Source: Octopus sinensis (lineage: Eukaryota). From it: a stretch of 50,486 nucleotides of DNA. The stretch covers positions 1 to 50,486 of the forward strand of contig NW_021834273.1 of the NCBI RefSeq assembly GCF_006345805.1, in the 5' to 3' direction. Position numbers and translations under genes: made by a program. Shown here one piece after another: positions 4,159 through 33,585 of the stretch (the first letter of the stretch is position 1; every line of letters begins with the position of its first letter). Below the pieces are notes generated by a model, which was not told the origin of the DNA, did no database searches, and saw nothing but the letters and a program-made list of their open reading frames with translations.

Positions 4159-4197
<39 letters not shown>

Positions 4198-4639
4198 ATA
4201 TATACGTATGTAGTTATGTATGTAAGCATGTATGTGTGTATGTAAGCTTGTATTTTCTGTTTTTTGGTTTATCTATGTATATATGTGTAAGCGCACATAT
4301 ACGTGTGTATGTAACGAAGACAATTGAAATTCAAATGTTCCAATCAATCCTATTGAGCTTTCAATCTTAAATTATTTCTAAACTTACTACTTAATATATA
4401 TCACCGTCAAAAATCTGACTTGTATGCATGTACACTTCTGGATTTTGCTATGATGTAAATCAATATTTTTCATTTTATATGTATTTGCTGATCTATAATG
4501 TTTTGCATTATACTGTATTATTATTGTTGTTATTGTTATTATGTTGCTATTTCACTATATTATGCTGTTGATTTTTTCCACCTAATATGTACTGTGAACC
4601 ACGTGATGCACATATTGTTTTACTGGTATTATTATTATT

Positions 4640-7207: not shown

Positions 7208-7833
7208 ATACATATATATATACACACACACATGTATAATATGTATATGTGTGTATGCAATTATTGATGTAATTAGGTTATAATGACTCAATTACATTTG
7301 TTTTAATTAATCTGATTATAATTATTTTTTTCCTTTCCTCTTTCTATAACTTTCAGGAGGCACTATGATGTGGTTGCTTCAATGCTGGTCCAGGTTAGTT
7401 AACAAATACATAATTATATCCTGTCTTTAATATTCGATATTAATATCATCAAAATACTGGTGGGTAGGTTTAATCAACTTCACTGCAGCAGCCTTTAAAC
7501 GGCAGGTCTTGGGTCTGTGAAGAATAATTATATTGGTGATAACAATGATGACAGTAGTAGTGGTGTTGACAGTCCAACTGACCACCACTGCTGACAGTAC
7601 TATCTTCAATGGTCAGACAAGACAAGGTCATTATGAATTCAACCCATATATATCAGATTATATATACTATCATCATCATCATCATCTTTTAATATCGCTC
7701 TGTCATGTTGTATGTGTGTGTGATATGTTATATATGTACATTGTTGGTGTCGGCATTTTATCTTGTGTCCAATAATTTATTTGGCTTCTTTTGGCTACTT
7801 TTTCCTCTCTGTACATATGTATAAATGTCTATG

Positions 7834-9915: not shown

Positions 9916-12900
9916 TTGCAGTGGCAATTTTGATTGTTATATGAATATGTGTGTGTATATATATATGTGCGTGTATATATATGTGTGTGTGTGTGCGTGT
10001 TACATCCATAACGTTAATATATTTATACATCTATATGTACAATGATGTAAGGATGTGGACACTAACCAACTCCCCCGTTTTATGGATCCCTTATTAACAT
10101 AGCAACATCAAAGGTTTACATTAAGTATATAATTCGTCTTTACTAGACTCGATCTGCTAATTATATTTTCACTCTTGTTCTAGTCCCCTAAAACATACTA
10201 TATAGTGAGGGTAAATGAAGATGAGGCTGAAACTATCTGTTTATGACATCTTAATAGATTTATCATGTCCCTAACAAATATCCATAGCGTGTTATAGAGG
10301 GACCTTACAGAAGGTTGACTACACTAACAAACATCAAATGTACATGATCAGGTTGATCAAGTACCCAGTAGAAGACAGCAATGACACATCCACCCTAATT
10401 TTCATGTACATTTTCAATTTCTATTTTTACTTCCACAAAGGATTCAGTGAAACTGGATATTGAGAACAATCGTAAAAGAACACCCTTACTGGAAGCCATG
10501 TATGCAGCCCACCTCGGAATAGTCCATAAACTTATTATACATGGTGCGAACATGAATGCCGTCGACAATGATGGCAATAATTGTTTGCACCTTTCCATAA
10601 TAAAGAAAGGGATGTTTCATTCTGAGGTGGAACGCATTTACATTTTAGATAAGGTAAGTTTTTAAAATTGTTTGTGAATGTGTGTGTGTGGTTGGTGTTG
10701 TTTTTATATATATATAATGTATTGAGTATTAAAGGAAGTAGTGAGTACTTAGTATGAAAGATTAAGAAAATGAGAGAGACTGAAACAACGTGTTAACGAT
10801 ACAAGATACTTTATTCGACTGCCGTTGTTGTACAAGTTAATTGTTTTGGCGGGAAACAAAGTGAAAGTCCTTTTATCAAGGGAGACAATGGGCGACGTTG
10901 ATTGTTCATGTTTGTTGTGATGATTATATAACATCTTCCTTTTTTTTTTTTTTTAAATTTTTTTTATATCATCTGTATCTACTGGGAATAATTATTCGTC
11001 GTCCACTTTTTGTGGTTTTATTATTTTGTAGTGTTGAATTCTGTAGTTGTGCTGTTTTTGTTTTTTCATGCGTGTTTGTTGACTTTGGAAATATATTTTC
11101 ATAATCTAATTCTTCTGTTATGCGAACGTGTTCGTTTGTTTTAAGAATATGTTGTCTATTTCGTTTGACTGTATTTCCTTCCTCTGTTATTACTAAGTAT
11201 GAACGAGGTTGCTCTAGTTTTTTAATTATTTTGCCCCTTCTAAACCAATTGTTGTTAAACTTAATTCTAACCGTGTCGTGTGGTATTAACTCTGGGAGTT
11301 CTGTTGTAATGTTTGATTTCTTCTTTTCGTGAGGCCTGATACCAATTTTGTCGTGTAATATGTTTGGGAGATTTGTTCGCAATGTTCTATTCATTATTTG
11401 ATTTGCAGGGGATGGTGCACCATTTTGTAATTTAGTCGTGCGTAATGCTAAGAGCGCTAACTGAGGTTCTTCGTCACTTTTGATTCTGAAATGAGTTCCG
11501 TATATAAACTGATGAAATTTCCTGCATGCGAAAACTATACTGAGAGCTTCGCTCTCTATCGGACAGTAGTTTTGTTCCGCTTGAGTTGTTGCACGAGATG
11601 CAAACGAAACAGGTAGCCATCTTTCGTTGTGTTTCTGCTCAAGTATCGCTCCGAGCCCATGCTTACTAGCATCTGTAGTTATTTTTATTGGTAGATCTGG
11701 ATCATAAAATTGTAGCACTGGTTTTCTGGTAATCATTTCTTTTATCTTTTTTATTGCTTCGATTTGTGGTTTGTCGAATGACCATAACGTGTCACTCTGT
11801 AGAAGCTGGCGCAATGGTGCTGTGACTTCGGAGTAATTAGATAAAAATTTACATAGGTAATTTGTCATACCTAGGAATCTTTGTAATTCTTTTTACTTGT
11901 TGGCAGTGGCATGTGAATGATTGCTTGTACCTTGGTTGGATCTTGTTTTATCCCTTCGCTGGTTAATATATGCCCAAGGTACTTGATTTGTGATTCATAG
12001 AAGATACACTTTGATTTATTTAACTTAATCCGTGCTTTCGGATTCGATCGAAAACTTGTTGTAGTCTATTTGTGTGTTCTTCTAAAGTGTTGGACCAGAT
12101 TATGATGTCATCCTGTGAATTTCTTGCTCCTTCTATGCCCTCTATTATTTTTGAAATTTCTTTTTGGAAAACTTCACTGGCGCTGTGAATTCCAAAGGGT
12201 AGTCGTGTGAAGCGATACCTTCCAAAAGGTGTGTTGAACGTTAAAAGATGGGAGCTTTCTTCGTCAACTGGAATTTGCCAGTATCCATTAGATGCATCGA
12301 GTTTTGAAAAATATTTAGGGTTATGCATTTGTGCAAAAATGTCCTCTGCTGTAGGGAGTTTGAAATGTTGCCTTTTTATGGCTTTGTTTAGATTCTTGGG
12401 GTCTAAACAGAGTCGGAGTTTTCCGTTGGCTTTTTCAACGATGACTAGGGAATTTACCCAGTCTGTAGGTTCACTAACAGGTTTTATGATATCTAATTCT
12501 GTCATTCTTTTTAATTCTTTGTTGAGTTTTTCTTTTATAGAAAAAGGAACCGATCTTGGTGGATGAATTACAGGAGTTATTTGTGGATCCACTGTGATAT
12601 GATGTGTTATTGACAAAGTGCCGATTTCTCCGAAACAGTCTTCATATTTTTCTATTATGTCGTTTGTGTTCGACGAATTTATTTTTGAAATTCTCTGAAT
12701 CAGGTTCAGATCTTTAGCTGTCTTTGCATCTATAACTGCGTGTGAGTTTGTTTTTGCAACAATGAATTTCATTTGTTTTGATACTTCTTTGTATTTAATG
12801 ACTGCTGTGCATTTTCCTAGCACTTTTATAGCTGTGTTATTATTGTAAGCTGATAATCGAGTTGAAGTTTTTTGCTGTTGTGGTTTTGGAATTATATTTC

Positions 12901-15008
12901 TATATTCTCTGAATGGCAGTACGGTTACGTCTGCTCCTGTATCTATTTTGAATGTTACATTCGAGTTGTTCACTTTTAGTTCGACCGTCCAAATGTCTTT
13001 TGGAGTCTTGAACTTTTCGATTTTGTGCACGCGGGAATTATTTGCAGTGATCATTTCGAGTGCATGTGTATCGTCATCTGATTCATCGTCGGTATGTATC
13101 TCTACTTTATGTACAATTTTCTTGATTTGCACATTTTTGCATAGTGTCCTTGTTTCTTGCATTTTTCACATGTCTTGTGAAATGCTGGGCATTTATTTCT
13201 TTTGTGATTATAACCACAATAGTGACAGTTAGTGACGTAGTGTTGACTTGGCGCTTGAAACTTCGCGGGCTTTCTGTCACTTCCGCCTTGTTCGTTTTGA
13301 TGTCTGGATTGCATATGGCAGGTTATTTGAGTTTTGGCGCCTTTTCTGTCGTGTTGACTATATACCCTCGAGATTTCGTTATCTCTTGTTTCGGATGTGG
13401 CATTTAGCATCCTTGATTGGAGTCGTGTTTGCTCTGCACTCTGACCTGCTTGAATTGTTTTTTGTAGGTCTAAATTTGGTTCTCTCAATAATCTTTCTCT
13501 TAATCTCATGTCTCTGATTCCACATATCAGAATATCTTTGGTGAGACTGTCTGTGAGGTTGCCGAATTCGCACTGTTGTGCCTTTTGGCACAATTCGTAC
13601 TCATCGAATTTTTGATGTTCCGCTTGTCCACATGTGAAGAATTTGTGTCTTAGGAAAGTTATGTTTTTCCTGGGTTCACAATATGCATCGAATTTTTCGA
13701 TTACTGTCTGAAGGTTCATTTCTTCGTCGGGTGAATCGAAATCCAGTGTGGAATGGATATCTCGGCCTTTAGAACCGATGCAAGTTAAAAACATTGAAGT
13801 TTTTACTTTGTCTGGCTTCATGTCACTTTCTGTTGCTATCAAAAAGAGATTGAATTCTTTTTTCCACTTTTTCCATGCTGCGGCTAGATTTTCCTGATTA
13901 AAGTCTAGGTCTTTTGGATGCGGTAAATTTTCCATTTCGTCTTTGAAGTATGATTTTCAACTTCTTTTTTCCTTTGGTTTCTGTATTTTGGGTTCTTTTA
14001 GTATTCTGACACCATGTTGTTTTTATATATATATAATGTATTGAGTATTAAAGGAAGTAGTGAGTACTTAGTATGAAAGATTAAGAAAATGAGAGAGACT
14101 GAAACAACGTGTTAACGATACAAGATACTTTATTCGACTGCCGTTGTTGTACAAGTTAATTGTTTTGGCGGGAAACAAAGTGAAAGTCCTTTTATCAAGG
14201 GAGACAATGGGCGACGTTGATTGTTCATGTTTGTTGTGATGATTATATAACAGTTGGCATTAGAAAGGGCATCCAACCACAGAAACCATGCCAAAACTGG
14301 CAATTGGACCCTGAGCTGCTCTGCAGTTGGCCAGCCCTTGCTGAACCATTGAACCCACACCAGCATGGAAAATGGACATTAAATGATGATGAGGAGGATG
14401 AGTAGAAGTGTGAGCTTGTGTGTGTGTGTGTGTGTAAGATAAAGAGAGAGAAATAGAGAAACGGGCAGACATTGCTTGCCATGTCTATTCACTCCCATCC
14501 ACCTCTCTTCCATTAGTATTAAGTAATCCAGTCAATCCAGATAACCCTAGTTATATTATGTAACTAACTATATTCCATCTCCTTTCACCCTCGAAGGCAT
14601 GCTCTCTCCACTGTAAAGGAGGTAACCCATCTTGTTGGCTATATAAACACAGCCATCACAGTGTGAAGGAAAGGTGACCAATGACAAAGAGGAGACATTC
14701 CCAAATAACAATGAAACAGGGAGGAGGAGAGGTCTGTGTGACATGAAAGACGATAACCTTTATAATGCTGGTGCCATGATAAATGCATCCAGACCATTCT
14801 GTGAAGAATTCTTCCCGAAACGACTCTTTATCACACATCTTGCACACAATGTGTATCCACTGGTTTCCTGTAGACATGTCATCACAATGTTGAATGTTAG
14901 AACACTAGAGAATGGATACAATGAAGGAAGGTCCTTGGTGTGTTTTCCTGTATGTAGGTTGTGTATGTTCAACTACATATTTATCTGTCTCTCTCTCTCT
15001 CTCTTTCT

Positions 15009-15068
<60 letters not shown>

Positions 15069-18000
15069 AAATGCATCAACATGTATCCATCGGGAGATCT
15101 GATGGTATATATTGTCTACTGTTTCAGAATTCAACCAACTCTTTGATTCCCGTATAAATAAAGGTCATTACTGATGTGTGACTCTATTTCAAACATTTGA
15201 TGATCATATGTAAATTGTAGTAATGTCTACTTTGGTGAGAAGAAGCCACTCTTGCAGTCAGCTACCCACCCAACTGGAATTGTCTAACAGTTTGAGCAGT
15301 TTATTAACTATAATGTGTTGGTGTGCTGCCTCAACTGTGACACTAATTCTTACTTCCTTTACTTCACCTTCATTATCCAAAGATGTTTCTTTATTAATTA
15401 TGGAAACGTTGTTATTTTTGGATATGTCTGTATGGTGTTGCTTTTGTTGTTGTGTCTGTTCTAAGTATTCTCAGTTCTCATGTAACTTGTTTGCTGTCAT
15501 GTTGTTGTGTTATATTTATATATACAATACTCCTCCATATTTCTTGTGTGATGGCCATTTATGGATTCACCAAGCTAGTTGAATAGGTTGTTGTTAGTTT
15601 GTTGTGTTCTAATATTTGTGATGTTTGTTCCATTATATTCCATATATTTGACTTGATGCTATGATTTGGTTTTAAATTGTTTTTTATTGAATATCTTGTG
15701 ATATTTGCAATTGGCAAATGATTATTTACGCATTAATTACCAATAAACTTGATGTTAATCAGTAATGTTTGTTCTGTTTAATATAATGACCATATATATA
15801 AAATATATAAAATATGTCATAATGTTGAGAATAGACTAAAAACAAATGAAAATGGGAAATGGATTCAATTAGAGATGATGTCGGAACTTAATATTGTGCA
15901 ATCAGTTTAAGCGCTGGAGATACAAACTATTTGTATACGTAGTTGAACTGTTGTGTAATTTGGGTATCTACGAAGTATATTTGTGAAATATTGTAATCAT
16001 CATTTTATACTTTGTCATTTGTAGTGCTGTGCTAAGCTTGGGTTGCCGATCAAAAAGAGGATCTCTGGTGTAGGAGTCGCCAGCTATCTAGCCCACCAGG
16101 GGGCCAACTTGTACAGGAAAAATAATAAGAATGTAGCTCCATTGGACCTCATTGGGGATGCAGATTTGAAAGAAAAATTTAAAGTATTATTCCCCCCACC
16201 ACAGTAAGTATTCATTGGCAGTGACAGTTTATTTTCTATTTTGTATATAATCATGTTTATGTTTGTTTAATTTTAATTCTACCAATACATTATACTGCCA
16301 TAGTGTCTTGATCAAAGGCCACACAACAATAGTATGAAGGACAATAAACAAAATGCAGTTGTTATGTGATCCAATGAAGAGCACTGTTTTGGTTGGTAGT
16401 TGTACCTCACTGTCTACCACCACCCATCTACCTTTCTTAGTTCCCTATTTTAAAGATTTGTGACCAATAAGAAAATGTAGAACTAAACAGTGAAGTGAAT
16501 GAACAGATTTTGAAGTTGTTACATAAAAACAAATGGAATTTATCTGTCTACCAACATGTTCTCTCTCTTCTCTGTTCCAATCAGTTCATTATTATGAAAG
16601 GTTTCGTAAGAAAATAAACTACACACCCAAACAGTGTGTGTATATATATCATCAACATCATTATCATCATTGCTTAACGTCCGTTTCCATCCTGGCATGA
16701 GTTGGATGGTTTGAAAGGGAGCCCGCCAGAAGTCTACACCAAACTTCTGTCTGTTTTGGCATGCCCAGCAGAGTGGACTGAGTAACACCAGCGCAGGCAA
16801 GGCCAGTTTTGGAATGGTTTTTACAGCTGGATGTCCTTCCAAATGCCAGCCATTTTACAGTGTGGACTGGATGCTTTTTATGTGGCCCCAGCACTGGCAG
16901 GGTCACCAAGTGTATATAGATATATAGATATATATACACACACACACACACATATTTCTGTTAATATTGCTAGAACACTGACACACATCTTCACAGAATA
17001 AAATTGCCAGGAAACATAAATCGTTCTGGTAACACCTATACCATTCTTAGTCTTTTAGGCTTCTTGGTCACATTAGACTCCTGTATTTCATAAGTTTTAG
17101 CTGTTACTTTGCCATATATTTGTTAGCTGCTGATGAACAAGACACATTATTCTCTGTGAGAATATGCATAACTTTCTTTGTCTGTTGAAATTCAGATATT
17201 GTCTTTAGATGTTGATTTCTGAACTGTATAAATATAGCTCTGTTTTATCCGATAGACAAGCATTGGTTGGACTTATTTATTAGCAAATAATCTTTTATGC
17301 AAATATTGTAATAACATAATGCATACAGAGCTGAGGTGTACTACAACTTACTGGGAAAGGGTAAAAGAGGGGATGGAAAGCAGTGCTTAGTCAAGTAAAG
17401 AAATACCGTTATGAAAGCTAGGAGTACATGCACGATACATAGAATAAAACACAAAAAACAGAAAGGCTAACAGTAAAAGAGGCATAAAAAGGTACATCAG
17501 GAGTGTAGTGGTCTATGTAGCTAAATAGTTGAATGATCTCCCTTGCAAGAAAGCATATAGAGTAACCTCCCTTTACAAAGTTTCTAGCAGCATCTGTGTC
17601 ATCAGATGTGATTCTTAATTATTCAAGTATCTTAGCATTTCTCTTGGTAGTTTCTAGAATATCTAGCATTCCATTCATAAAAACAGCTTGCTAACCCTGC
17701 TCTTTGCTTCTTAGTCGATTAGACTTAGAGCCATTCACGTCATTGCTATGTCCGTCTGTTTCTCTACGCCACATGGCTGAAAACCACCACTTGGCTATTA
17801 TTTCTATATTTCCTATCTCTGAACTTTCTTGTATAGATTATTTCATTCAACTAGATGCTACATATTAATTCTGTGTATCGTCATCGACCAGTAAATAAAA
17901 TATATTTTTCCGTAGTAAATATATAGGTCTTGAATTTATTCTTCATCTCTTTATGAACTCTTGTAAATAACATACACGCAGCCACATCAACACCTTGTAC

Positions 18001-21000
18001 TGGCTATATATCCTCGGTAAGAAAAGAATATTTTGAAGGATGCCGTATCCTGACAGCTAACAGCTGACTCAGGTGGTTTGTTGTGTGTTTAAATAATTCT
18101 GAGTGAGATAAAGTATTTCACACTGTTTTTTATTTTAATTTTATAAGAATGTCTGCTGCTGGCTGAGATTTTGAATTCAAAAATGTTGCCAAAGTTGTTG
18201 TTGGCAAGATTATGTATAAACCTAAGGGATTATACCAGATTAGCTGCTAGACTTCAAAACTTTAGTGTGCTAATACCCAGAGAAACAATACATTCAGTAT
18301 ATGGTGACTAACAGAGAGTATTTGCCTGGTTTGGAGATCAGATTGAAGCAAAGGTATATAGCATCTAATAAGATGTCAATACCCAGAGAAGCAATATATT
18401 CAAGATATGGTAACTAAGAGAGAGCATTTGCCTTGTTGTTCTTCTCTGAATAGATATTCTGGACAGGATGGGGATTCCAGATTGGAAATGTAAACTGTAA
18501 GTGTAGACGTATGATAGCCAGGCATAATTTTAAACTGATAACTTGACAAATTGACGGGCAGAGGTTTTACTGAGCAATACTTTGATATTTCTGATGATTT
18601 TTAGAAATGTGGTTCATGCATTACACATCATTGTTGACATTAATGTCACGGTCAAGTTCACCTGCAGACTTTTGAAGTTTGCTGTTCTGGAGAGAGTTGG
18701 TAAATTTTGGAATTTTCATTCCAAAGTGTATAGTGGTGCACCATTCTATGGCCAGCTTGAGTTTGCAATCAGCAGTGCATTGCTGCATTGTATCCAGGTC
18801 AGATTGAAGAAAGGATCTATAGCAGATAGTTGGCATGTATTTAGCTGATACATAGAAGGAGCAAGAGAAAACCAAGAGTAGTTCCTTGTAGGTCTTCTGT
18901 GTTGGGTGCAGAATGTTAGCTTAGTGTTGTGACTCTGTCTTTTCAACTGAGAATGTAAGTATTTTAAGCAGTTATATAATTTAGTCCTCGCACCCATTCC
19001 AGACAGTTGTGCCGTAATTGATCACTGTGGCATGGAATTAAAGACTTTGGTGAAGTTGATAGAGATAATATCCACCCATGAACCACCATCTGTGAAGAAA
19101 TTCAATGCAGCAACAGTTAGGGATAAATCGAAATGGTTGGAGTTTGAATAAGCTTATGAGGGTTCCAGATGTTCCAAAATGTCTTCCTGTAGATCCATTA
19201 ATTCTGTGAGACTGACTGGATGGTAATCAACAGGGGATGTCTGGTCACTCCCTTTTTGAACGGGGGAGAATACTGGCAACTTTCCATTAAACTGGGCTAA
19301 GTGTGAATTAGAAGAGGACAAAAAGCTGGTGCAGTAGAAAAAGGGTGCACCCTTTGAGAAGCAGATGAATAACACCACCAAGACAAGAGGAAGCATAATT
19401 GCACATATGCTTCAATTAGCATTGCGATATTGCAGAATTCAACAGGTTTTATGGAATTTGATCTCAGTAGCAGTGAAAACGGTACATTTGTCACTCCTTT
19501 AATATGGCAGGGTACCATGTTGCACCTTCTTCTTTTATCCCCTGTTCTTTTATCACGTCCAGCATCTCATCGATATTTCCTGGCAGTCTCTCACATATTC
19601 AGGCTTCTAAAACGTTTGTATGGCACCGACACTTATTCATGAATTAAGGATGGATGTGCTGAAGGTTAGTCTTGACATCTCCAGAATTGTAAAGTCGAAG
19701 CCAGTCAGGGAACTATACCTCAGTACAGTCGGAGTTCCAGGAAAACAAAGCAGTTTGGAAGTTATGGTGGCTTTTCTTTCTATCCATTAGAAATATTTTT
19801 GCAAGATTGGTGTATGATCAGAGTCACCTAAGGGTTCATCACTATTGAGGCTGATAATTTCAGGAGCAGTGGTAAATAGCAGATCGAAAGTGTTGTTAAC
19901 TCTTATGGGAGAGAGACTGCTTGGGATTAGTTTGAATCTAACATTAAATGAAGGAAATCTGTTGTGGCCAGTGGAAGATTTCCTAATCAATATTGGGTAA
20001 TTGAAATCACAAGTATGAGAACATAGGTAACCATTTTCATAGATGCAGCTCCAAAATTGTTTTGAGGATGGTAAATGTTGATGTGCTTTTATGTCGCAGA
20101 AAAATTCCTCTTGTGACTGGTTTAAATCTTCACAAGCAATTTCTGAAAAGCTTGAGCAAGCATAGACCATCGCACCACCTCCAAGGTAATGAAAGAGGTC
20201 TTTGTGAAAGAAAATGTAGCCAGCCATGCTAAAAACACCATTGCACAGTAAAGAATGTGTCCAGGTTTAACAAATGAGATTGGAATCAGTACTTTTAACT
20301 TAGGAATCAAAAATAGTGAACTTTATTGCATAAACTGTGGGTATTTTTAAACAATAATTTGTATCTCGATTTAAATCTGTCATGGTTCATGGAAGAGGAT
20401 ATCCTCAGACCAGTTTGCATCCCTTTTTCATCTGGTATTGAGTCATGATTTAAGGGACCTACAATATGTAACTTCAGGTGTGTATCAGGTGGTGAATGAC
20501 GAAGAGCTCAATTTATCACACCTGTCCTTATAAGAAGCTAAACAGTATGCACATAGCTCAGTAGAAGGTGAATCTAACTCGTTTGGGTTTTGATCCAATC
20601 AACTGAGGCAAATAAAATTGTTTTGGAGGAACACATCTGAAGTTGATAAGATGTAGATCAATGAACATGGACTCACCTATAACAAGGGGCAGGTTTGTAT
20701 GCAGGGCAAACCTAGACTGAAGTGTTTTGCTAAAGAACTTTACACATCGCCTTGTCCAGGAATTGAAGCCGCAATTTTACTGTGTGAGTCCAAAAGCCTA
20801 ACAACTTAGCCATGCACCTCACTCTGGTCAGTCTGGTGTTTCATAATATTCTGTACTGTAAACATAAAACAAACATGTAATATTTGTTAGAAATGAATGT
20901 TATAGGTGGGATGTGTTTTATGTTTTTTCCACAGATGTATGCTTTGTGAAGTGAATGAAGCCAGCATGGAGTTACAACCCTGTGCACATACTGTTTTATG

Positions 21001-23635
21001 TGAAGATTGTAGCAAAATTCAACTTAAAACATGTATAGAAAGCAAAAGGAGAGTTGGTAAGAATATGATTTGATGATCTGTCTGTTTGTCACATGACATT
21101 ATGGAATGGAATAATGTTGTATCGACCCAGATCTGTCATAATCTGACAGACGTATGATAAAAGATGTCCCAGGTGTCTTTTCTCTTTGATAGTATATCCA
21201 TGACTACACCCACTGAATATTGTCTTTATCCAAGTAGGAAACCTGTCCCACATCAAAAGAGTACTGTCTGCAACATAAGACTAATACGTTTTACTGAAAT
21301 ATAAATGAAATATCAATAAATCTCCAAGGTCCCATCAGTAAACATCAACTTTTTATATTCAGTTGTCAGCTTTTATATGAGGTTAATGATTTATAAGTAT
21401 CTTGGGAAACTGATAATTAAGGACAACAGTACTTCCTACAACATCACAGTCAGCTTTGTAATGTAAGAATTTCAATGACAAAATCTCAACTGAGAGTTTA
21501 AGGATCTGACTCTTAGCGAGTCTTATATATTCTTGAGAATGAATTCTAGTGTCCCATTTCAGATATAACTCCTTTGCAATAATGTGTAGATAAACAGTTT
21601 TAAGTTAAGGAGGTTTTATACAAATGTAATGTTTCAGGATACCTGTTATCACTTTCTGCTCCACCTGTGTAGAACTAATCATTGCTCACCTGGAAAAAGA
21701 AAAAGCTGCTTATTAAGGAGGATGAATGACATTGAAATATCTTCAGATCTTTCCTGAATCAGGTGGTATTCTGGTGAAGTGTGATGTGGGCAGTTAAAAT
21801 TAAAGATTACCAACAGTAACATATAAAAATGAGGGCTGGGGTATGTTTATCCTTCCTGAAGCAATGTGTCATGCCTTTGTGGCCAGATCTTTGAAGACCA
21901 GATTGGTTGACACTGGAATTTAGCAGAAGATGAGAAGAATATTGGTTAGTGAAGGTTCGAGATGAGAGGACAATGGCATGTCATATGACCAGCACAGACA
22001 TAACAAAGGAAAGACAAAACTAAGAGAAAAAGAGTGTTATGAAGTGATAACTAAGTGAGAGAATTTCAGAATTGTTAGATTAGTATATAGGATGTCTTAA
22101 TAGAAAGATGAGATTTAGAAAGGTTTGCCTATTTTGTTGTGGTTCTAAATATTGAACTATTATATAGTAACAGCTTAGAAAGTGTTGACCGAAAGCATAG
22201 TGGTCACCAATTGACTATTGATGATATGAATGCCTTACAAAAATGGAATATAGATTATTAAAAGAGACAAAGAAATTTTACTATGAAGTATAAAACTTTG
22301 AAATGCTTATTTCAGTGTGTCCAAAGTGTAAAGAAAAAGCAGTCAAGACGGTTGTAGAATCTGTTGGTGAGTATAAAATATCTGTAATTGATTTCTATAA
22401 ATTTTACCTTCACCTGAGATATATTATTTGTGTGAATGACTGAGAACAGGTTCCATTCTTAATTTCCAATTCTTATTTCAGAATGTCCAAAGTGTAAAGA
22501 AAAAGTAGAATCTTTTGGTGAGTATAAAATAACTGTAATTGATTTCTATAAATTTTACCTTCACCTGAAATATATTATTTGTGTGAATGTCTGAGTACAG
22601 GTTCCATTCTTAATTTCCAATTCTTATTTCAGTGTGTCCAAAGTCTGAAGAAAAAGGAGTCCAGACGGTTGCAGAATCTGTTGGTGAGTATAGAATAACT
22701 GTAATTGATTTCTATAAATTTTACCTTCACCTGAGATATATTATTTGTGTGAATGACTGAGAACATGTTCCATTCTTAATTTCCAATTCTTATTTCAGTG
22801 TGTCCAAAGTCTGAAGAAAAAGCAGTCAAGACGGTTGCAGAATCTGTTGGTGAGTATAAAATAACTGTAATTGATTTCTATAAATTTTACCTTCACCTGA
22901 GATATATTATTTGTGTGAATGACTGAGAACAGGTTCCATTGTTACATTTCTTTCGAATGGTTAGCGATAAAAGTAATTCTATTCGTTACCTACAAATGCA
23001 AGAATATCCAATAAAGGGGTTTTATAGAAATATGGAAACATGAGACACAGGAAAAATGTCTTTCACGATGAGGCCAAAATACAAAAGATAAAATATAACC
23101 CTGAAGCTGTTCTCTCCCCATAATGAGATACATTCACTTTTCTTTCATCTCATTGTTGTCTCTCTCTCCTTCCCTGTTTCTTCCTTCATCTCTCTCTCTC
23201 TCTCTCTATGCATCTACATGTAGCAGCCTCTGTACTTTCCAGTCGTGTAACAACATGAATTGTATTTAAAATATTGATATTACAGAAATTTAATAAAATG
23301 TCCAGCAGTGTTGGCAAGTATCCTCTGTTGCTAAAATGGTTAAATTAGAAAAAAAAAAACAATAGAGTTAATATTGTCTTTTGAATGAAGGAAGAAAAAC
23401 ATTTTGTTGTTTAATGGTAAACAGGTGAGTTAATGACAGTGTTTGTTTGTTGTACATTTTCAATAAGTTTACTGATTATTGTTGTTGATGTTCTTGTTGA
23501 ACAAGATGGTTAAGTTGAAAGCTTACAAGTGTGATCACCCTGTCTTTTTTTTCACTGTTAGTAAATCTATCATTACATCCATTAAACGATGTCTTTGTCC
23601 AAGTAAGAAGCTTTGGTCTGCTGCTGAGACAATTG

Positions 23636-23684
<49 letters not shown>

Positions 23685-26600
23685 TAAGATGGACACTGGT
23701 TGCAAGATACAATACAATCGATGTTATTGTCCTCATCATTTACAGTCTGCTCTCCTTGCTTCCATGTAATGGATGGGTGATCACTGTCCAAGTCAGTTCT
23801 TATTCAGAGTTACTGTCCCCCTTGACTGCTTGAGAAACACATCTCCCTTAAACATTCCACCTTTTCTATGGTGGGATGCCCTCCCCAACACCAACCACTT
23901 CATAAAGAGTCCTGAGTACATTTTAATGTGGCACAAGCACTAGAAAGATTTTCATGTGTCCAACATTGAAACTGGAATAGCTGTAGGTTGCACACTATCA
24001 GTCACTTGGTTTGTGCTTGTTATGGGGATCGGCAGATTTATGAGAAGAAATTACTCAGGCGAAATCATCTAAGAAAACATTCATGGATGACATAAAAATG
24101 CTAACAAGAGATCCAAAGTATATGCAATCAGTCCAAGATAGATTGGATGGACTAATTAATTGCTCAAGAATGCTGTTTGAAACAAATAATGAATGCATTC
24201 TGACATTTGTGAAAGGTCAACAGAAGCAAGTGAAGTTCAAAATAGCAGGAGAAATGATGCGAAAGGTTAAAGAGTAACTTGTAAAACGTTTTGGACTGTG
24301 GTAGATGATCTCATTGTCCGATAAGAGTAGAGGCATTGATGTCATTGCAGAAACCGAGGATGGGCAATAAGCATTTGCCAAGTCAAAACTTCTGGGCAAA
24401 AACAAGATTTGGTGCTTGAAGTTTGATCTATATCACCATCTTGATAATATATTCTTAAATATCACTTCTTTTGTACCATTTCAGATATTTTTCCTTTGCG
24501 ATAATCTGTGTATGAACATTTGCATGTTGTTAAAGATGTTTTGTGCAAGTATACAGTGTTTTAGGATACTTGCTATCACTTTCTGTTTCACCTGTGTAGA
24601 ACTAATCATTGCTCATCAGGAAAGAAAAGCATTTCATTAAGGAGTCCTTAAATATTTCCTGAATCAGATGAAATTCTGGTGAACTGTGAGTTGCATTGTT
24701 TAAAATTAAAGATTAAAAGCAGCAACGTTTGACAAAGATAACAGGTGTGACATGAGTTTGTGTCAAGGTCATTGATGACCAGCTTGGTTGACATCAGAAT
24801 TAAGCAAAAGAAGAGGGGAATGTTGATTAGTGAAGTCCAGTGGTGAGGGGACAATGCCATGTCATAGGTTTAGAATGGATACAAGAGATACATGTGATCA
24901 TTAAATAAGATGATTGCAACGTTGTTAGATTAAGTAGGATGTCTTAATAGAAAAAGGAGGCTTAGGAAGGTCAGTCTATTTTATTATGGGCCTAAATATT
25001 GAGCCATTATATAGGACCACGGTAGAAAGTATAAAACTATCAACCAAACCTATAGTGGTCAGCAGTTGTCCATTGATGATAGGAATGTCTTACAATAATA
25101 AAATATAAACCATTAACAGAGATCAGGAAATTGTGCTATGAAGTGTAAAATTTGGAAATATTTATTTCAGATTCTGTAACGGTAGAGGAGATTCATCTTC
25201 ATAGGGTGTCCCAAAAGTTGGCAGGTAAATGGATGGAACTTGGTGAGTATAAAACACCGAATTTCTATAAATTTTGCTTTCAGCTAAACTTTTGTTTGTT
25301 TGAATGACTGAGAACCGATTCCATTCCTAATTTCCAATTGAAAGTTTAGCTATAAAGTAAAGCTATCACTGAAATTTCATAAAATATCTATGGACGTCAG
25401 CACGGTTGTAAAATGTATAAATTAGAAGGTCCAGTAGAGTTAATATTATCGTTTGTAAAAGGGGACTCAAAAATATTGTTGTTTAAGAGTAAACAGGTGA
25501 ATTAATGACAATGTTTTTGCTTGTTTACACTTTTAGTAAGTTTACTAGTAGAGTGTTGTTGTTGATGTTTATTTTGGCAGATATCTGCCTTAATCTGGCA
25601 GAATTAAGGGGAAAGGGTTCCAGATGTGCCATCGCTCTTTCTCTTGGGTGAAGAGGACCACATTATCAAATGTAACCTTTTTAAAATGAGAGTGTGCATT
25701 GTGTGGGACATGTTGTCATCTCTCCCCTGGCCAGTCTGTTTTTCTATATTTATTGTAATTCTTTAGTCCCAGGTCAACATATATTTCCTGTCTCTATAGA
25801 AGACAGGCCCCATTGTTGATTGTGTTCATGGCTGGATTGAACTCAGCATTGTAAGTTAATGAAACACTCATTTATATTAGAAAAAAAAGAATCTCAACAG
25901 AAAATTCAAACTCAACTTGATCTTGTTTCTCAATTGAAATCATTTCACTCTCCTTTACATTACAAATGTCACGTGGAAAGGCATGAACATCACAATATCC
26001 CATTTCCCCTTCTCCGACAGTTTAACACAACATAAAATATCATTTATACAATGCTCCTATTATTTACAGCAATGTCTTCTACCTCCCTATGGTACCTATA
26101 TACATCTAGATAGAATGAAGCATAGAGAAATGTCTTTACCAGGTACATTGAGCGGTGCTGGGGATTAGATTTGAACCTTTGATCCCTGACTCAAGGGATC
26201 ATGACAATATCCCCTGAGTCAGCTGATAGAAACCATCATCTTCATCATCATTTGACGTCTGTTTTCCATGCTGGCATGGGTTGGACTGTTTGACTGAGGT
26301 CTGGAGAGCCAGTGGCTGCACCAGGCTCCAATCTGATCTGGCAGAGTTTCTACAGCTGGATGCCCTTCCTAATGCCAGCCACTCCGAGAGTGTAGTGGCT
26401 GCTTTTTATGTGTCACCAGTACAGGAGCCAGTCAGGTGGACCTAGCATCAGTCATGTTCGGATGGCCTTTTTACGTGCCACCAACACAAGGAGTCAGTCA
26501 GATGACACTGGCATCGACTACATTTGGATGATGCCTTTTATGTGCCACCAGAACGGGGGCTAGTCATGGGGCACTGGCCACAGCTGCAATTTTGGTTTTA

Positions 26601-29002
26601 CTTGACTCAACAGGTCTTCTCAAGCATATCATGTCACCCGATGCATTAAGGATACTCTTAAATGGGCCGGACATGCAACACTGGCATCGGCCATGGCTGC
26701 GATCTCACTTTAGTTGCTGGGTCTTCTCAATCACAGCATATTTCCAAAGGTCTCGGTCTCCTGCCATTGCCTCTGTGAGGCCCAATGTTCAAAGGCCATG
26801 CTTCACCATCTCATTCCATGTCTTCCTGGGTCTACCTCTTCCACAGCTTCGTTCTACAGTTAGGGAGTGGCACTTCCTCACACAGTTGTCCTCATCCATA
26901 CGTAACACGTGACCATACCAGCATAGTCGTCTCTCTTGCACACCACATTTGATGCTTCTCATGTCCAACTTTCCTCTCAGGGTGTTTACACTGTGTCGTG
27001 TATGCACACAGACATTCCACATCCAGCGGATCATACTACCTTCATTTCTGTCAAGCCTACGCATGTCCTCAGCAGTCATGGCCCATGTTTCACTGCCATG
27101 TAGCATGGCAGTTCACACTCAGAAATGATTTATCTAATTTAAGAAAGGACATCATCTACAACATTGCCAGCTTGCTATACCTCTGGGTGTCATACAAAAT
27201 ATACCAGTCATATACTGGGATAAAATGAATCCACTAACACCAGGTCCATTATCATCATCACCTTACATCCATTTTTCTAAGTTTGTAATGGTCAGACGAC
27301 TTCTCCCAGAGTTGTTGTGGTCCTTTGTCCAGTTTGATCGCTTGTTTCTTTCCACTTGAATTCCAGGCACTTCTTTACCCAGATTTCATCTGCCATGTCC
27401 CTTCTATATCTATACCATTAACTTTTTTCTTGTACACTATCACAGATTCTTCTGAGATCCAGTTATTTGGCTCCAAGATTTCAACACATTAACATTACAC
27501 TTCTAGAGATGTCTGCTCACCTCATTCCTGGCAGTTTCCATTGTATCTTTCACATTCTATGTAACATTGCATGAGGTGTATTTGTAAAGTGCAATCTCTC
27601 CCTCATATGGAGACAGAATCCCTTAGTTGCCAGTAGACATAACAACTCCCTGTACATTTTTCATCTCATTTTCCTTCTAACTACTGTGCTTTCAGAATAG
27701 TTTCCTCTACTTCTAATTCTGTCCTTTAGGTAACAGAAACTATCAACTATGTCTTTCATACTTGTTCCTATGAACTATTCCTGTACACATACAAAGTCCT
27801 TCCTCAGCCCTAACCTTAACCTGCCTCCTTGTAAACTTGCTTGTTTGTGAATGCAGTGATTCTATCAGGACCCAAGTGTTGTAGGTGTATGGTGTAGATG
27901 TTGGTAAAACTCTTCTCATTGCTTTATTTACTCTAGGGCCTCTCCTGTATTAGATTCTTTGAAATTGTGGCCTTGATCCAGTGAAAGAAGTTCTTGTTAT
28001 AAGTCATGAATCCAAAAACCTTAAGCCAGCGCCCTCTATAATATGTGATATTTACCTAACAGTATTATATTTTTACTTTGGGGTGGTTGAAATCATTCAG
28101 GTACACAATACCCACTTTTGAGATATTTCTGAATGTTGATAATTTTTAAATATTTATTAATCATAGGTGGAAAGACATCGCAAATGACTATTTCAGGCAT
28201 TGATCACAGGACGTTATCAAACGACTGAGATTGTATTCCTCCAAAGAGTCTCTGGAGTAACGTTACTCAACAAGGTGTGCAGGCTGGAGATTTGGGGCCT
28301 CTCCAGGTCAAGTGACTGCTTCTCTGCATTGAGAATTCACAGCTCCAGTACTCCTGGCATGTGATTAAAATGTCACAGGAAAGAACCACAAGAGGGATGA
28401 AGGAGGTGCCTGAAGACTCTTCCCCTACAACTCTCCTATGAATAGAGGGCAGAGAAAATGGACGGATGGATGAAATTATCTGTTGGTGGTCTTTGTTAAT
28501 TCTTTAGGCTCTCATACACTGCTACCCACACAAACACTTCTCCTGCCAGTTGTTCACCAGACATTTTCTCATGTGTAATTTTCAATTCTTTAAAATATTA
28601 TTCTCCTTCTCCAGCCTTTATTTCAACTTGTTTGATATTTTTGTCAACATCTTTAGAAATAGATGACAATGTCTTCTAATTTCCCTGTTTCTTAAGTATT
28701 TCTCATTCTTCTATTCACATAATTTCTTTGTCCTAATTAATACAGGTTTTATATTATCGTTAATGTTGTTGCAATTATTTCTTATTTCTTTTGCAGGAAG
28801 GGAATTAGGAATTCGACAAAATGACCTGGAAATCATCAGGCATGACTATCCTCAAAGCGTTAGGGAACAAGGCTTCCAGATGCTGTTCAAATGGCATCAA
28901 AGTACTGATCCAGAGAAACGTACACCTCGAATATTAAAAGCAGCTCTTAAGGAAACTGAATGTTATGATGCACTCAAATGTTTATCATCAGAATTCAATT
29001 GA
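872..29002 (+). CDS. Spliced gene, 5'-partial: ankyrin repeat + RING-like + CxxC micro-exons + death domain protein (Mind bomb-like ANK-RING module). join(872..1028,1612..1868,7357..7393,10441..10653,16025..16203,20935..21056,22316..22366,22482..22517,22633..22683,22799..22849,25171..25242,28797..29002)
   Basis: All introns are GT-AG and phases chain 2-0-2-0-0-2-1-1-1-1-1-1. 1431 nt after the first base read without a stop to TGA at 29000-29002. Ankyrin repeats are rejoined correctly across the junctions. Confidence 0.85.
1612..1868 (+). CDS. Exon B, ankyrin repeats ([16 protein letters not shown]...[11 protein letters not shown])
   Basis: Acceptor tttttag, donor AA|gtaagt, phase 0 continues exon A. 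Confidence 0.92.
2690..4092 (-). mobile_element. 5'-truncated RTE-clade LINE; uninterrupted 440-aa RT C-terminal ORF 2762..4084
   Basis: [34 protein letters not shown]-terminal C2H2-like motif, and a gatgccaacaaca-type 3' end. Confidence 0.92.
4325..5340 (+). repeat. ~1-kb AT-rich non-coding dispersed repeat, copy 1 (Penelope pLTR- or retrozyme-like), containing a hammerhead motif
   Basis: Aligns by eye to the reverse complement of ~35130-36130. Boundaries are approximate. Confidence 0.6.
5005..5131 (+). ncRNA. Minimal type-I hammerhead ribozyme motif, copy 1 (intact core)
   Basis: ATCT-CTGAAGA-AGCC-[92 nt hairpin]-GGCT-GAAAC-AGCT-GTA-AGAT; stems I, II and III can all form. Confidence 0.7.
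5531..5860 (-). mobile_element. tRNA-derived SINE, young copy
   Basis: Minus strand has A box TGGCTCAGTGG, B box GCTCGAATCC and a CORE-like gtgttcttgagcaaggcacttta segment. Near-identical to 49931-50254. Confidence 0.9.
5861..7260. repeat. Compound (TA)n/(TATG)n microsatellite with an embedded ~40-nt RTE 3' tail (7075-7112)
   Basis: Direct inspection. Confidence 0.95.
7357..7393 (+). CDS. Exon C, 37-nt micro-exon ((K)[12 protein letters not shown])
   Basis: Acceptor tttctataactttcag, donor CAG|gttagt. It supplies the missing second helix of the [11 protein letters not shown] repeat and converts phase 2 to phase 0, as required. Confidence 0.85.
8211..8341. mobile_element. 131-bp MITE, Tc1/mariner-type
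   Basis: Perfect 19-bp TIR CCTCAAGGACATGTATTAC / GTAATACATGTCCTTGAGG, flanked by TA on both sides. Confidence 0.8.
8690..9740 (+). mobile_element. Decayed RTE LINE fragment (AP endonuclease and linker)
   Basis: YFYDTLL...[14 protein letters not shown]...GFG remnants with stops and frameshifts. Confidence 0.75.
10441..10653 (+). CDS. Exon D, ankyrin repeats ([19 protein letters not shown]...NNCLHLS...ILDK)
   Basis: Acceptor ttccacaaag, donor AAG|gtaagt, TPL and GANMN motifs. Confidence 0.9.
10934..10954 (-). promoter_or_regulatory. Polypurine tract of the LTR element
   Basis: Minus-strand A-run + GGAAGA abutting the 3' LTR. Confidence 0.85.
10969..11868 (-). pseudogene. Gypsy RT connection/RNase H fused in frame to the integrase C-terminal tail
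   Basis: [10 protein letters not shown]...YCPIESEAL...FRIKSD joined directly to [13 protein letters not shown]...[13 protein letters not shown]. Confidence 0.85.
12020..13162 (-). pseudogene. Gypsy aspartic protease + reverse transcriptase (frameshifted at both ends)
   Basis: [49 protein letters not shown]. Confidence 0.92.
13102..13935 (-). CDS. Gypsy Gag with C-terminal zinc knuckles
   Basis: CHYCGYNH...CPA...[14 protein letters not shown]; begins 79 nt after the 5' LTR. Confidence 0.9.
   Translation of the reverse strand: MENLPHPKDLDFNQENLAAAWKKWKKEFNLFLIATESDMKPDKVKTSMFLTCIGSKGRDIHSTLDFDSPDEEMNLQTVIEKFDAYCEPRKNITFLRHKFFTCGQAEHQKFDEYELCQKAQQCEFGNLTDSLTKDILICGIRDMRLRERLLREPNLDLQKTIQAGQSAEQTRLQSRMLNATSETRDNEISRVYSQHDRKGAKTQITCHMQSRHQNEQGGSDRKPAKFQAPSQHYVTNCHYCGYNHKRNKCPAFHKTCEKCKKQGHYAKMCKSRKLYIK
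14004..14014 (-). promoter_or_regulatory. Primer binding site, TGGTGTCAGAA (tRNA-Leu type)
   Basis: Immediately inside the 5' LTR; complementary to the ...TTCTGACACCA 3' end that I recall for tRNA-Leu(CAA). Confidence 0.8.
14253..14400 (+). mobile_element. RTE-family 3' tail; the Gypsy element inserted at its 5' edge
   Basis: gttggcattagaaagggcatcc...catggaaaatggacattaaatgatgatg, shared with other copies in the window. Confidence 0.8.
16025..16203 (+). CDS. Exon E, last ankyrin repeats (CCAKLG...[22 protein letters not shown]...FPPP)
   Basis: Acceptor gtcatttgtag, donor CA|gtaagt. Not in the ORF track. Phase 0 to 2 bridges exons D and F exactly. Confidence 0.88.
16655..16905 (-). mobile_element. 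RTE-family 3' tail
   Basis: catcatt...aacgtccgtttccat...ctggatgtccttcc, reverse complement of the shared tail. Confidence 0.75.
18540..20250 (-). mobile_element. Old decayed CR1/L2-type LINE fragment
   Basis: NNTFDLLFT...LGDSDH (APE end), PVQKG...[13 protein letters not shown]...IHFG remnants. Confidence 0.75.
20680..20820 (-). mobile_element. Decayed tRNA-derived SINE head
   Basis: Minus strand gcatggctaagttgttagg...ttcaattcctgg resembles the 5531 family. Confidence 0.55.
20935..21056 (+). CDS. Exon F, RING-HC-like finger (CMLC...PCAH...CEDC...CIES)
   Basis: Acceptor ttttttccacag, donor G|gtaaga, C3HC4 spacing with the final ligand as Ser. Confidence 0.88.
22316..22366 (+). CDS. Micro-exon G1, 51 nt ([17 protein letters not shown])
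   Basis: ttatttcag|...G|gtgagt, phase 1-1, open frame. Confidence 0.75.
22482..22517 (+). CDS. Micro-exon G2, 36 nt ([12 protein letters not shown])
   Basis: Same splice sites as G1, with an in-frame 15-nt deletion. Confidence 0.7.
22633..22683 (+). CDS. Micro-exon G3, 51 nt ([17 protein letters not shown])
   Basis: Same splice sites, phase 1-1, open frame. Confidence 0.7.
22799..22849 (+). CDS. Micro-exon G4, 51 nt ([17 protein letters not shown])
   Basis: Same splice sites, phase 1-1, open frame. Confidence 0.7.
24020..24420 (+). mobile_element. Decayed non-LTR RT fragment
   Basis: MDDIKML...CILTFVKG resembles RT motifs; the clade is uncertain. Confidence 0.45.
25171..25242 (+). CDS. 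Exon H, death domain N-terminal part ([24 protein letters not shown])
   Basis: tttatttcag|...G|gtgagt. It joins exon I to give the death-domain hallmark L.gkW.eLGReLG. Confidence 0.85.
26238..27118 (-). mobile_element. RTE LINE 3' fragment (RT end + 3' UTR)
   Basis: [11 protein letters not shown]...RLCWYGHV...GRPRKTW plus the shared (GAT)n tail. Confidence 0.9.
28797..29002 (+). CDS. Exon I, terminal coding exon, death domain ([14 protein letters not shown]...QMLFKW...[10 protein letters not shown])
   Basis: Long pyrimidine tract + gcag acceptor, death-domain pattern, TGA stop. Confidence 0.88.
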
Positions 29003-29180: not shown

Positions 29181-30180
29181 GGATCTTTACCTTTTGACCG
29201 GCAGATTTAGAAAATAATTTTTTGGAACTAAACACTTTCAAACTTCGTATTCTGGTAGAATGTGTCGTATAAAACATCTTTTACTCTTAGCGTTTTTGAG
29301 AAAAGTTTATATTTACAAAGTTATTTCGTGTTAAATTTGTCGTATTTCGGTAATTTCAACCAATCAATGGCGTGTATTCATCTGAATAAAATTACTGCCG
29401 TTGTTTGTCAACAACAACTTCTGGCGGTGTATATTTCGTTTGTCACTGTTATTTATGACATATTTCATCTCAGTTATGTTTGTATAAAAAACGAGTCTAT
29501 CTGAAACATGTTTACTTCATGGCACCACCATAATCGTTCGTGCATTTCTACTGGTTTTAGTTATGTTTTTTCCTGTTTTTCAGCTATTATTTTTGGTAAG
29601 ACTTTTTTAACCCTAACCCTAACACCTTAGCCCTAACACTAAAACCCTAACCCTAACCCTAAAACCTTAGCCCTGACACTAAAACCCTTGTCCTAACACT
29701 AAAACCTTAACTCTAACACTAAAACCCTAACCCTAACCCTAAAACCTTAGCCCTGACACTAAAACCCTAGCCCTAACACTAAAACCTTAACTCTAACCCT
29801 AAAACCCTAACCCTAACACCTTAAAGCTAAAACCAGTACAAATGCACGAACGATGTCATAAATAACAACAACAAACGAAATATATACCACCAGTTGTTGT
29901 TGACAAACATCATCATCATCATCATCATCCTTTAACGTCCACTTTGCATGCTAGCATGGGTTAGCAGTAATTTTATTCAGCTGAATACACATCATTGATT
30001 GGTTGAAATTACTGAAATACGACAAATTTAACACGAAATAACTTTGTAAATATAAACTTTTCTCAAAAACGCTAAGAGTAAAAATGTTTTATATGACACA
30101 TTCTACCAGAATACGAAGTTTGAAAGTGTTTAGTTCCAAAAAATTATTTTCTAAATCTGCCGGTCAAAAGGTAAAGATCT
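29181..30180. mobile_element. 1-kb non-autonomous foldback DNA transposon with long TIRs and 8-bp TSD
   Basis: GATCTTTACCTTTTGACCGGCAG... arm (~29182-29575) inverted with ~29825-30179; GGATTTGG direct repeat at 29173-29180 and 30181-30188. Confidence 0.88.
29608..29822. repeat. Degenerate (CCCTAA)n telomere-like array forming the foldback spacer
   Basis: aaccctaaccctaa interspersed with ctaaaacc and ttagccct variants. Confidence 0.85.
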
Positions 30181-32074: not shown

Positions 32075-33585
32075 AGACCCTGCTCTAATTGCTGAGTCAC
32101 TATCAGAACTGGAGGAGAAGTTTCAGGTGTGGAAACAAGGATTAGAATCGAAGGGGCCTTAGAATCAACCTAGCTAAAACTGAAGTCCTAATAAGTAGGA
32201 AGGTAGACAAATCACAAACGCCTTCAGGTAGATGGCCCTGCTCGATCTGTAGAAAAGGCGTAGGTAGAAACTCTATAAGATGCACCAAGTGTAAGCTATG
32301 GACACATAAGAGGTGCAGCAATGTCAAAGGAAGGCTAACTGGGAAGATAATTTTTGTATGTGGCAGATGCTCAGGAGTAATAAACACTGAAAATGCGCAG
32401 AGACCAACTTACGCCACATTCCAGGGAGAAAAACTAGAAGTAGTTGATAGCTTCCGTTACCTAGGTGACCAAGTCAGTAGCGGGGGGCGGGTGTGCTGAA
32501 AGTGTAGCTGCTAGAATAAGAATAACCTGGGCAAGGTTCAGAGAGCCTTACCTCTGCTGGCGATAAAGGGCCTCTCGCTCAGAGTAAAAGGCAGACTGTA
32601 TGACGCATGTGTACAAACAGCCATGCTACATGGTAGTGAAACTTGGGTCGTGACTGCTGAGGATATGCGTAAGCTCACAAGAAATGAAGCCAGTATGCTC
32701 CGATGGATGTGTAATGTCAGTGTGCATACTCAACAGAGTGTTAGTGCCCTGAGAGAAAAGTTGGACCTAAGAAGCATCAGATGTGGTGTGCAAGAGAGAT
32801 GTTTGCGCTGGTATGGTCATGTGTCAAGAATAGATGAAGATAGTTGTGTGAAAAAGTGCCACACCCTAGCAGTTGAGGGAACTTGTAAAAGAGGTAGACC
32901 CAGGAAGACCTGGGATGATGTGGTGAAGCACGACCTTCAAACATTGGGCCTCACTGAGGCAATTACTAATGACTGGGACCTCTGGAAATATGCTGTGCTG
33001 CGGAAGACTTGGCAAGCGCAAGTGTGACTATAACCTTGTGGCCTATGCTAGGGTGTAACCAGTCCAGTTATTTGTGCCTTTTCTTCATTGGACACTAAAC
33101 TCTGCTTGTGAAGACCAGTTGAGGCAAGTGAAATTGAAGTCGAAATAAACTCGGTGATTGGCATCCGTTGCTAGTGGAGTGCTAAGAGTACTATACGAGT
33201 GAGATCGTTGCCTGAGCAACAAGCTGGCCTTCGTGCCGATGGTAAGTTAAAAACACCATTCAAGTGTGATTGTCACCTGCGTCGCCTTACTGGCACTTGT
33301 GCTGGTGGCACATGAAAAAAACATTCGAGTGAGATCGTTGCCAGTGCCGCTGGACTGGCTCCTGTGCAGGTGGCACATAAAAAGCACCATGTGAGCATGG
33401 CCGTTGCCAGTACCACCAAACTGGCACATAAAAGCACCCACTACACTCTCGGAGTGGTTGGCGTTAGGAAAGGCATCTAGCTGTAGAAACTCTGCCAGAT
33501 CAGATTGGAGTCTGGTTCGCCAGACCTCAGTCAAATCGTCCAACCCATGCTAGCATGGAAAGCGGACGTTAAACGATGATGATAT
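32075..33585 (+). mobile_element. RTE LINE 3' fragment
   Basis: MLHGSETW...CLRWYGHV...GRPRKTW, 3' UTR tandem units, (GAT)n tail. Confidence 0.9.

Follow-up and report, generated by a model that had tools for sequence, protein, structure and literature searches.

The octopus Octopus sinensis carries, on contig NW_021834273.1, a gene in which a RING finger and a death domain are separated by a tandem array of four micro-exons (22316-22849, forward strand), within a stretch of 50,486 nt that makes up the entire scaffold (positions 1 to 50,486, hereafter the window). The RING has lost its last zinc knuckle, and two of the four micro-exons encode a CPKC motif that resembles it. This raises the question of whether the array completes or switches the broken RING, as was originally predicted, or serves another purpose. 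We propose that the array is a splice-tunable, copy-number-variable spacer between RING and death domain that arose from degenerate copies of a death-domain exon, a reading that we regard as likely.

A cassette array and its annotated isoforms

The array comprises four tandem exon-plus-intron units of 166 bp each except one of 151 bp, which bears out the original observation. Tandem Repeats Finder reported a 166-bp period (3.7 copies, 22356-22950, score 861), and a 43-nt probe running from the final base of the exon through the first 42 of the intron matched four times against zero expected, with no match in 100 shuffles. The surrounding sequence is that of an AT-rich, repeat-rich animal genome. 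Micro-exons G1 (22316-22366), G3 (22633-22683) and G4 (22799-22849) are 51 nt long and encode 17 residues each, and G2 (22482-22517) is shortened to 36 nt and 12 residues by a 15-nt in-frame deletion, the sole indel among the exons, as had been noted. Translation bore out that G1 and G2 encode CPKC (C-type modules) and G3 and G4 CPKS (S-type modules). The introns of units 1 to 3 (22367-22481, gtgagtat...cttatttcag; 22518-22632; 22684-22798) are each 115 nt long, and the array ends in a partial fifth copy of the unit intron (22850-22945) that runs on into the 2.3-kb intron leading to exon H. All of these features, like the exons of the gene discussed below, lie on the forward strand.

Inspection of the splice sites agreed with the good acceptors, consensus donors and 1-1 phases claimed for all four units: each micro-exon has the acceptor cttatttcag, the donor TTG/gtgagtat and phase 1-1. 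Exon F, which encodes the RING, ends in phase 1 and exon H, which opens the death domain, starts in phase 1, a frame that is confirmed by exact RefSeq protein matches. Since the G exons are symmetric, every subset of them is in frame. With donors and acceptors in place and lengths of 51, 36, 51 and 51 nt, all divisible by three, G1 to G4 behave as cassette exons should, and the array is one of genuine symmetric cassette micro-exons.

The original prediction was made in the belief that no expression data existed, which is out of date, as all combinations are already modelled in RefSeq. Used as the query of an exhaustive HMMER search, the G1-G4 peptide retrieved a protein of 450 residues (P0028, isoform X12) that matches the window exactly, one of 22 isoforms (X1-X22; XP_036355683.1 to XP_036355703.1 plus XP_029656757.2) of a single O. 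sinensis gene. Among these proteins all 16 subsets of G1 to G4 are present, namely none (X22), four singles, six pairs, four triples and the full set (X1). G1 occurs in X1, X3, X10-X12, X19 and others, while G2, G3 and G4 are the sole G exon of X20, X18 and X17, respectively. The four triples and the full set, built as query sequences, are exact RefSeq proteins (X1, X3, X4, X6 and X7), and models with and without each G exon exist, all of them automatic predictions with exons identical to those of the array. A paralogue in the same species, LOC115225502, has at least eight module combinations, and a second paralogue locus has isoforms X1-X3. The cassette behaviour of the G exons is therefore already annotated for this locus. 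The RefSeq models give no account of how the modules arose, what they do or that the RING carries a deletion. Literature searches on octopus MIB2 and on tandem cassette micro-exons found no publication on this octopus family.

Because the splice sites are alike and the introns short, the spliceosome could join any donor of the array to any later acceptor, which would yield zero to four modules of 12-17 residues. We hypothesise that this choice is made stochastically, and that between RING and death domain the modules act as a flexible or loosely helical spacer whose length would be set by splice choice together with copy number. The original prediction had both factors altering the RING-to-death-domain spacing and toggling ligase competence. 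The first part agrees with the 16 RefSeq subsets and with paralogues of one to six units, whereas the second finds no support in the tests of RING completion described below.

Origin, spread and divergence of the modules

The flanks of the G block (approximately 21640-22315 and 22857-23500) are homologous to those of exon H (25171-25242; 72 nt, 24 residues, phase 1-1), the first death-domain exon. At locus L003 of the same family the first death-domain exon encodes ETPKLEEKCLQDVAKLLGVNWQQV. Its acceptor and donor surroundings match those of the G exons, and the two kinds of exon align at every base apart from a 21-nt gap close to the 3′ end. Death-domain exon 1 was thus the source of the micro-exon, a shortened copy of which a 166-bp piece was later amplified. 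In the sequence of events that we infer, the first death-domain exon would have been duplicated together with its intron flanks, the copy would have lost 21 nt and with them the hydrophobic core of helix 1, and tandem amplification would then have multiplied a piece made up of the exon, 10 nt of its acceptor and some 105 nt of intron.

The parental domain is well formed. Exons H and I (28797-29002, the rest of the death domain and the stop codon) match the Pfam Death profile (PF00531), scoring 43.5 bits and covering positions 3-83 of its 86. In an AlphaFold2 model of isoform X1 from exon E (16025-16203, upstream of exon F) to the end, built on an alignment of 20 family sequences, the predicted local distance difference test (pLDDT) score of this region is 84-97. 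Exons H and I thus form a confident death domain, as in RIPK1, ankyrin-3, PIDD and CRADD. Compared with the death domains of those proteins, the G copy is without the 21 nt that include the conserved LLG..W core; the G modules do not match the Death profile and no fold is predicted for them.

Copy number varied when checked across paralogues and two species, with one to six units per locus. One module, of S-type, is present at L002 (O. vulgaris, OX597842.1, 28.35-28.42 Mb) and two at L003. The window and its O. vulgaris counterpart L006 have four (in the order C, C, S, S), L001 and the paralogous protein P0003 five each, and L005 six, including ECPKCKEK. The RING knuckle is deleted in the window and L006 and intact in all the others, reading CPIC in L005. 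One of the five units in L001 (O. vulgaris, 10512-10560, 49 nt) is frameshifted; the deposited model skips it and starts at an ATG in the upstream acceptor region (MLIS...).

The units differ in how fast their parts change. Within the window the introns differ by 3.7% on average, in line with the roughly 97% identity first reported for them, and the G exons by 10.2%, a difference that is not significant in the window alone (p = 0.15). When 16 units from five loci were pooled, variation was seen in 27 of 51 exon columns (pi 0.154) and in 16 of 90 intron columns (pi 0.034; Fisher p = 2e-5). Conservation of the unit introns (22367-22945 in the window, and those of L001, L002, L003, L005 and L006) is accordingly four to five times that of the adjoining micro-exons, a difference for which neither an RNA structure nor a known RNA family accounts. 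The statement that every exon change alters the amino acid is correct for the window (8 of 8 variable sites) but not across paralogues, where 10 of 31 changes are synonymous. With 21 non-synonymous and 10 synonymous changes the exons are roughly neutral, and the intron is the conserved part.

Tandemly duplicated, alternatively spliced exons are known both as cassette repeat exons in linkers and as mutually exclusive clusters, such as those of Dscam and of human genes with mutually exclusive exons (PMC5740500). The G array resembles these systems in its origin by tandem duplication, in the equal length of its exons, in the preserved frame and in the choice of exons by splicing. However, it is not mutually exclusive, since annotated isoforms carry zero to four units in any combination, and its modules have the look of a spacer, not of interchangeable forms of one folded domain. 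Furthermore, unlike in Dscam, no RNA pairing of the docking/selector type was found: in a test restricted to a single intron, that of unit 2, the fold was no better than that of shuffled controls (z = -0.42), and an Rfam search of the unit intron returned no match. The locus represents an extreme case of isoform multiplication by duplication of frame-neutral micro-exons, with four exons giving 16 annotated proteins.

The RING deletion and the CPKC modules

Exon F (20935-21056) encodes a RING of the IAP/MIB type (zf-C3HC4_3) without the Cys7-x2-Cys8 knuckle. The RING consensus is C-x2-C-x(9-39)-C-x(1-3)-H-x(2-3)-C-x2-C-x(4-48)-C-x2-C, and RINGs of the IAP type usually become inactive when any one of their zinc ligands is lost. 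The peptide of exon F reads C-x2-C-x11-C-x-H-x3-C-x2-C-x7-C-I-E-S, with serine in the eighth ligand position. Over about 230 bp exon F is identical to the paralogue L002 except for 18 nt (TAAAAGATGCCCTAAGTG) that are missing from the window between TAAAA direct repeats, near position 21024. This deletion removes RCPKCK, and the TCIES tail has therefore slid into the Cys7/Cys8 position, so that the tail cysteine (KTCIES) now lies seven residues after Cys6, in the old place of Cys7, a serine stands in the place of Cys8, and seven of eight ligands are left. The RING is thus indeed broken, as had been suspected, but CIES, which had been taken for a defective Cys7/Cys8 pair, is the normal post-RING tail moved by the deletion. 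We propose that a microhomology-mediated deletion took the last zinc knuckle in the lineage of this gene, and that this event was separate from the origin of the modules.

Exon F alone does not provide the eight ligands of the C3HC4 profile (PF13920), and its match ends at profile position 40 of 49. Among solved structures, a query with the intact, paralogue-type knuckle aligned best to the RINGs of cIAP2 (3eb5), cIAP1 (6hpr), MYLIP/IDOL (2yhn) and XIAP, in which a CPxC followed by a basic residue forms the last knuckle. With cIAP2 all eight ligands aligned, this CPxC and basic residue included. The window RING differs from these in lacking the CPxC knuckle and in its position, which is not C-terminal but followed by linker and death domain.

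The deletion is shared with other loci. The O. vulgaris orthologue L006 (OX597842.1, 21.17-21.24 Mb; proteins P0048, P0050 and P0054) shows 98.4-99.2% identity to the window across most of the collinear length, with a 16.8-kb block at 98.7% and one 4.3-kb block at 95%. It shares the 18-nt deletion, and its four units, the shortened G2 among them, are those of the window in unchanged order; it differs by one extra arginine codon between RING and G1 (KRRRV). The layout of the window, deletion included, recurs in a further O. sinensis copy (P0051, P0052), which lies on a scaffold of 21.3 Mb. Deletion and four-unit array are therefore older than the split of the two species, no assembly error and not private to the window. 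L002, also considered as the orthologue, was rejected, being a collinear paralogue of about 96.5% identity. At all three loci in the two species, each of the 12 coding exons is intact, as are the splice sites.

Given a RING without its last knuckle and a CPKC exon downstream, the micro-exons could rescue it: the CPKC of G1, or of G2 when G1 is skipped, would supply the missing ligands of zinc site 2, and only isoforms with a C-type module would be active E3 ligases. The predicted distance of 16 residues from Cys6 to CPKC was confirmed for both G1 and G2, and it falls within the 4-48 residues of the consensus. The C-type modules read CP[KR]C[KR], the pattern of the family's native knuckles (CPKCK or CPICR), although in different codons; the deletion-bearing gene has kept both CPKC exons open at three loci in two species, and RefSeq isoforms exist both with and without CPKC. 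In the Pfam zf-C3HC4_3 model (49 positions) the alignment extends to position 46 through G1 and to 48 through G2 but not through G3. The score, however, does not rise. It is 33.8 bits (positions 4-48) with the paralogue-type knuckle present and 31.2 bits (4-40) for exon F followed by H, against 27.6 bits (4-46) for F plus G1, 31.0 bits (4-48) for F plus G2 and 26.6 bits (4-39) for F plus G3, the model threading CPKC by means of a 9-residue insertion.

The wider family also speaks against rescue. CPxC-type modules equally occur behind intact RINGs (L005/P0027 and LOC115225502) and so do not represent a response peculiar to the deletion. The modules of LOC115225502 read CPKF, CPRC, CPRC and CPKC, those of O. 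bimaculoides (EGPKLSDKEVQTAAEPG and EIPKSGEKVPKTSQNV) contain no cysteine, and the position of the second cysteine is variously S, F, C or L. By sequence comparison the CPxC modules are an older subtype, one of several in the family. The idea that CPKC arose in G1 and G2 after the RING deletion was rejected, as the first unit of L005, behind an intact RING, combines a C-type exon with a private intron variant, both shared with G1, of which it is the positional homologue. Nor was a transfer of CPKCK from the DNA of the RING exon supported, since the codons differ (TGC CCT versus TGT CCA; CGA versus AGA). The spacing is one residue longer in L006, and the module derives from a death-domain exon rather than from a zinc motif. 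The retention of the open exons may reflect only the short time since the species split, given that the gene evolves near the neutral rate: the coding sequences of the window and L006 differ by 10 non-synonymous and one synonymous changes, a ratio of per-site non-synonymous to synonymous differences (pN/pS) of 2.7 that does not differ significantly from 1. At about 1% divergence, relaxed constraint and positive selection cannot be separated.

The structural model gives no signal of CPKC packing onto the RING. In isoform X1 pLDDT is 50-67 for the RING and 24-33 for residues 55-130, from TCIES through G4. An intact-RING paralogue (P0023) run as a control scored below 50 for the RING and below 50 for the modules, which appeared as low-confidence helices, so AlphaFold2 cannot judge the RING here and agrees only with a flexible linker. 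With a Pfam score that does not rise, C-type modules behind intact RINGs, a variable second cysteine and an origin from a death-domain exon, the predicted completion or switching of the RING by CPKC is left unsupported, and we consider it quite unlikely. The more specific proposal that C-type micro-exons serve as spare, splice-selectable knuckles, with the E3 activity of the deletion lineage dependent on inclusion of G1 or G2, seems to us very unlikely. Were it true, a RING divided between a constitutive exon and an alternatively spliced micro-exon would constitute an on/off ligase switch operated by splicing, and zinc binding by the cysteine modules, with or instead of the deleted knuckle, would make the finding important; we know of no splice-completed RING.

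Adjacent C-type modules could alternatively form a Cys4 zinc site of their own (C-x2-C-x13-C-x2-C for G1 plus G2), a small knuckle independent of the RING that splicing would insert or take out. C-type modules do occur in adjacent runs of two to four (G1-G2, three in LOC115225502, four in L005) with a constant 13 residues between cysteine pairs, and there are weak, sub-threshold zinc-ribbon hits in Pfam, as well as a match of 31.2 bits between the triple array of the paralogue and Gin, a bacterial CxxC family. However, for G1 plus G2 the best zinc-ribbon hits (E = 0.076-0.3) fall below the Pfam cut-offs, as do all the ribbon hits, and the match to Gin is driven by repetition of a CxxC motif. 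AlphaFold2 gives low-confidence coil or isolated helices (pLDDT below 35 for G1 plus G2), G2 has lost five residues, and RefSeq also contains isoforms with a single C-type module. Separate zinc sites are accordingly an extremely improbable explanation.

A further possibility is that the RING-deleted lineage is a non-functional copy decaying in a cluster of fast turnover, with the micro-exons spliced as tolerated noise. The lost zinc knuckle, the deletion in G2, the frameshifted unit in L001 and the near-neutral 10:1 ratio between the orthologues would all fit such decay, and 16 combinations are what unregulated splicing would be expected to produce. Against it stand the intact exons and splice sites at three loci in two species, the strong conservation of the unit introns and the well-formed death domain, and the divergence between the orthologues leaves too little time to tell constraint from neutrality. 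We regard decay as unlikely.

The spacer reading itself meets several difficulties. With roughly 96% likeness between units, ambiguous read mapping or enumeration of models could account for part of the 16 combinations, and the low pLDDT of the modules was obtained from a shallow alignment of 20 sequences. A pure spacer also leaves unexplained both the four- to fivefold higher conservation of the introns and the likeness of CP[KR]C[KR] to a RING knuckle, two observations by which a functional cysteine motif and regulated splicing may each keep a small chance.

Host gene and neighbouring elements

The upstream exons of the host gene encode ankyrin repeats; its N-terminus is cut by the scaffold end, and the orthologue P0050 is complete. 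RefSeq names its isoforms 'E3 ubiquitin-protein ligase MIB2-like', 'MIB1-like' or 'ankyrin-3-like'. True MIB1 and MIB2 have MIB/HERC2 and ZZ domains, two or three RINGs and no death domain. Pfam searches of the paralogues, of the orthologue and paralogue loci and of the C-terminal 220 residues of the window gene returned ankyrin repeats, a single RING and the death domain, and nothing else. MIB/HERC2, ZZ, MIB repeats and multiple C-terminal RINGs were not found in the Pfam lists of the paralogues and orthologue or in those 220 residues. The window gene is therefore not a bona fide orthologue of MIB1 or MIB2, and 'MIB2-like' is a best-hit label only. The gene is an ankyrin-repeat / RING / death-domain gene of a lineage-specific, fast-evolving octopus family, whose proteins, combining RING and death domain, probably act in cell-death or innate-immune signalling. 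Annotators should note that the name reflects a best hit, that the RING in this lineage is without a zinc knuckle and that the linker modules descend from a death-domain exon as degenerate copies.

Within exon H, 15 nt from its start (25171-25185, ggtag/AGGAG), lies an alternative acceptor, which removes DSVTV from the beginning of the death domain. It is used in six further RefSeq isoforms, among them X2, X5, X15, X16 and X21, in which this exon begins at EEIHLH. The RefSeq models also include a 12-residue exon at 7358-7393, of a kind easily missed by open-frame scans. Compared with L002, window exons B, D, E and I are 81-93% identical and their flanking introns 96-99%, the trend seen in the micro-exon units. 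Exon D resembles a more distant paralogue (P0004 type), which suggests, from the alignments, that mosaic gene conversion or diversifying selection has acted in the family.

Mobile elements surround and interrupt the gene. An element of the long terminal repeat type on the reverse strand (10696-14252), with reverse transcriptase, RNase H and a gag-like open reading frame between direct repeats of about 200 bp (10752-10950 and 14071-14260), is absent at the corresponding point of the intron between exons D and E in L006 and L002 and is therefore a recent insertion. Elements of the long interspersed nuclear element type are represented by a reverse transcriptase fragment (2765-4213, reverse strand), a near-intact pair of reading frames for endonuclease and reverse transcriptase (38992-42123, forward strand) and a reading frame with a PHD-like finger (32146-33024, forward strand). 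About 600 bp downstream of the stop codon lies a telomere-like tandem array derived from TAACCC (29607-29825), with periods of 20, 40 and 80 bp.

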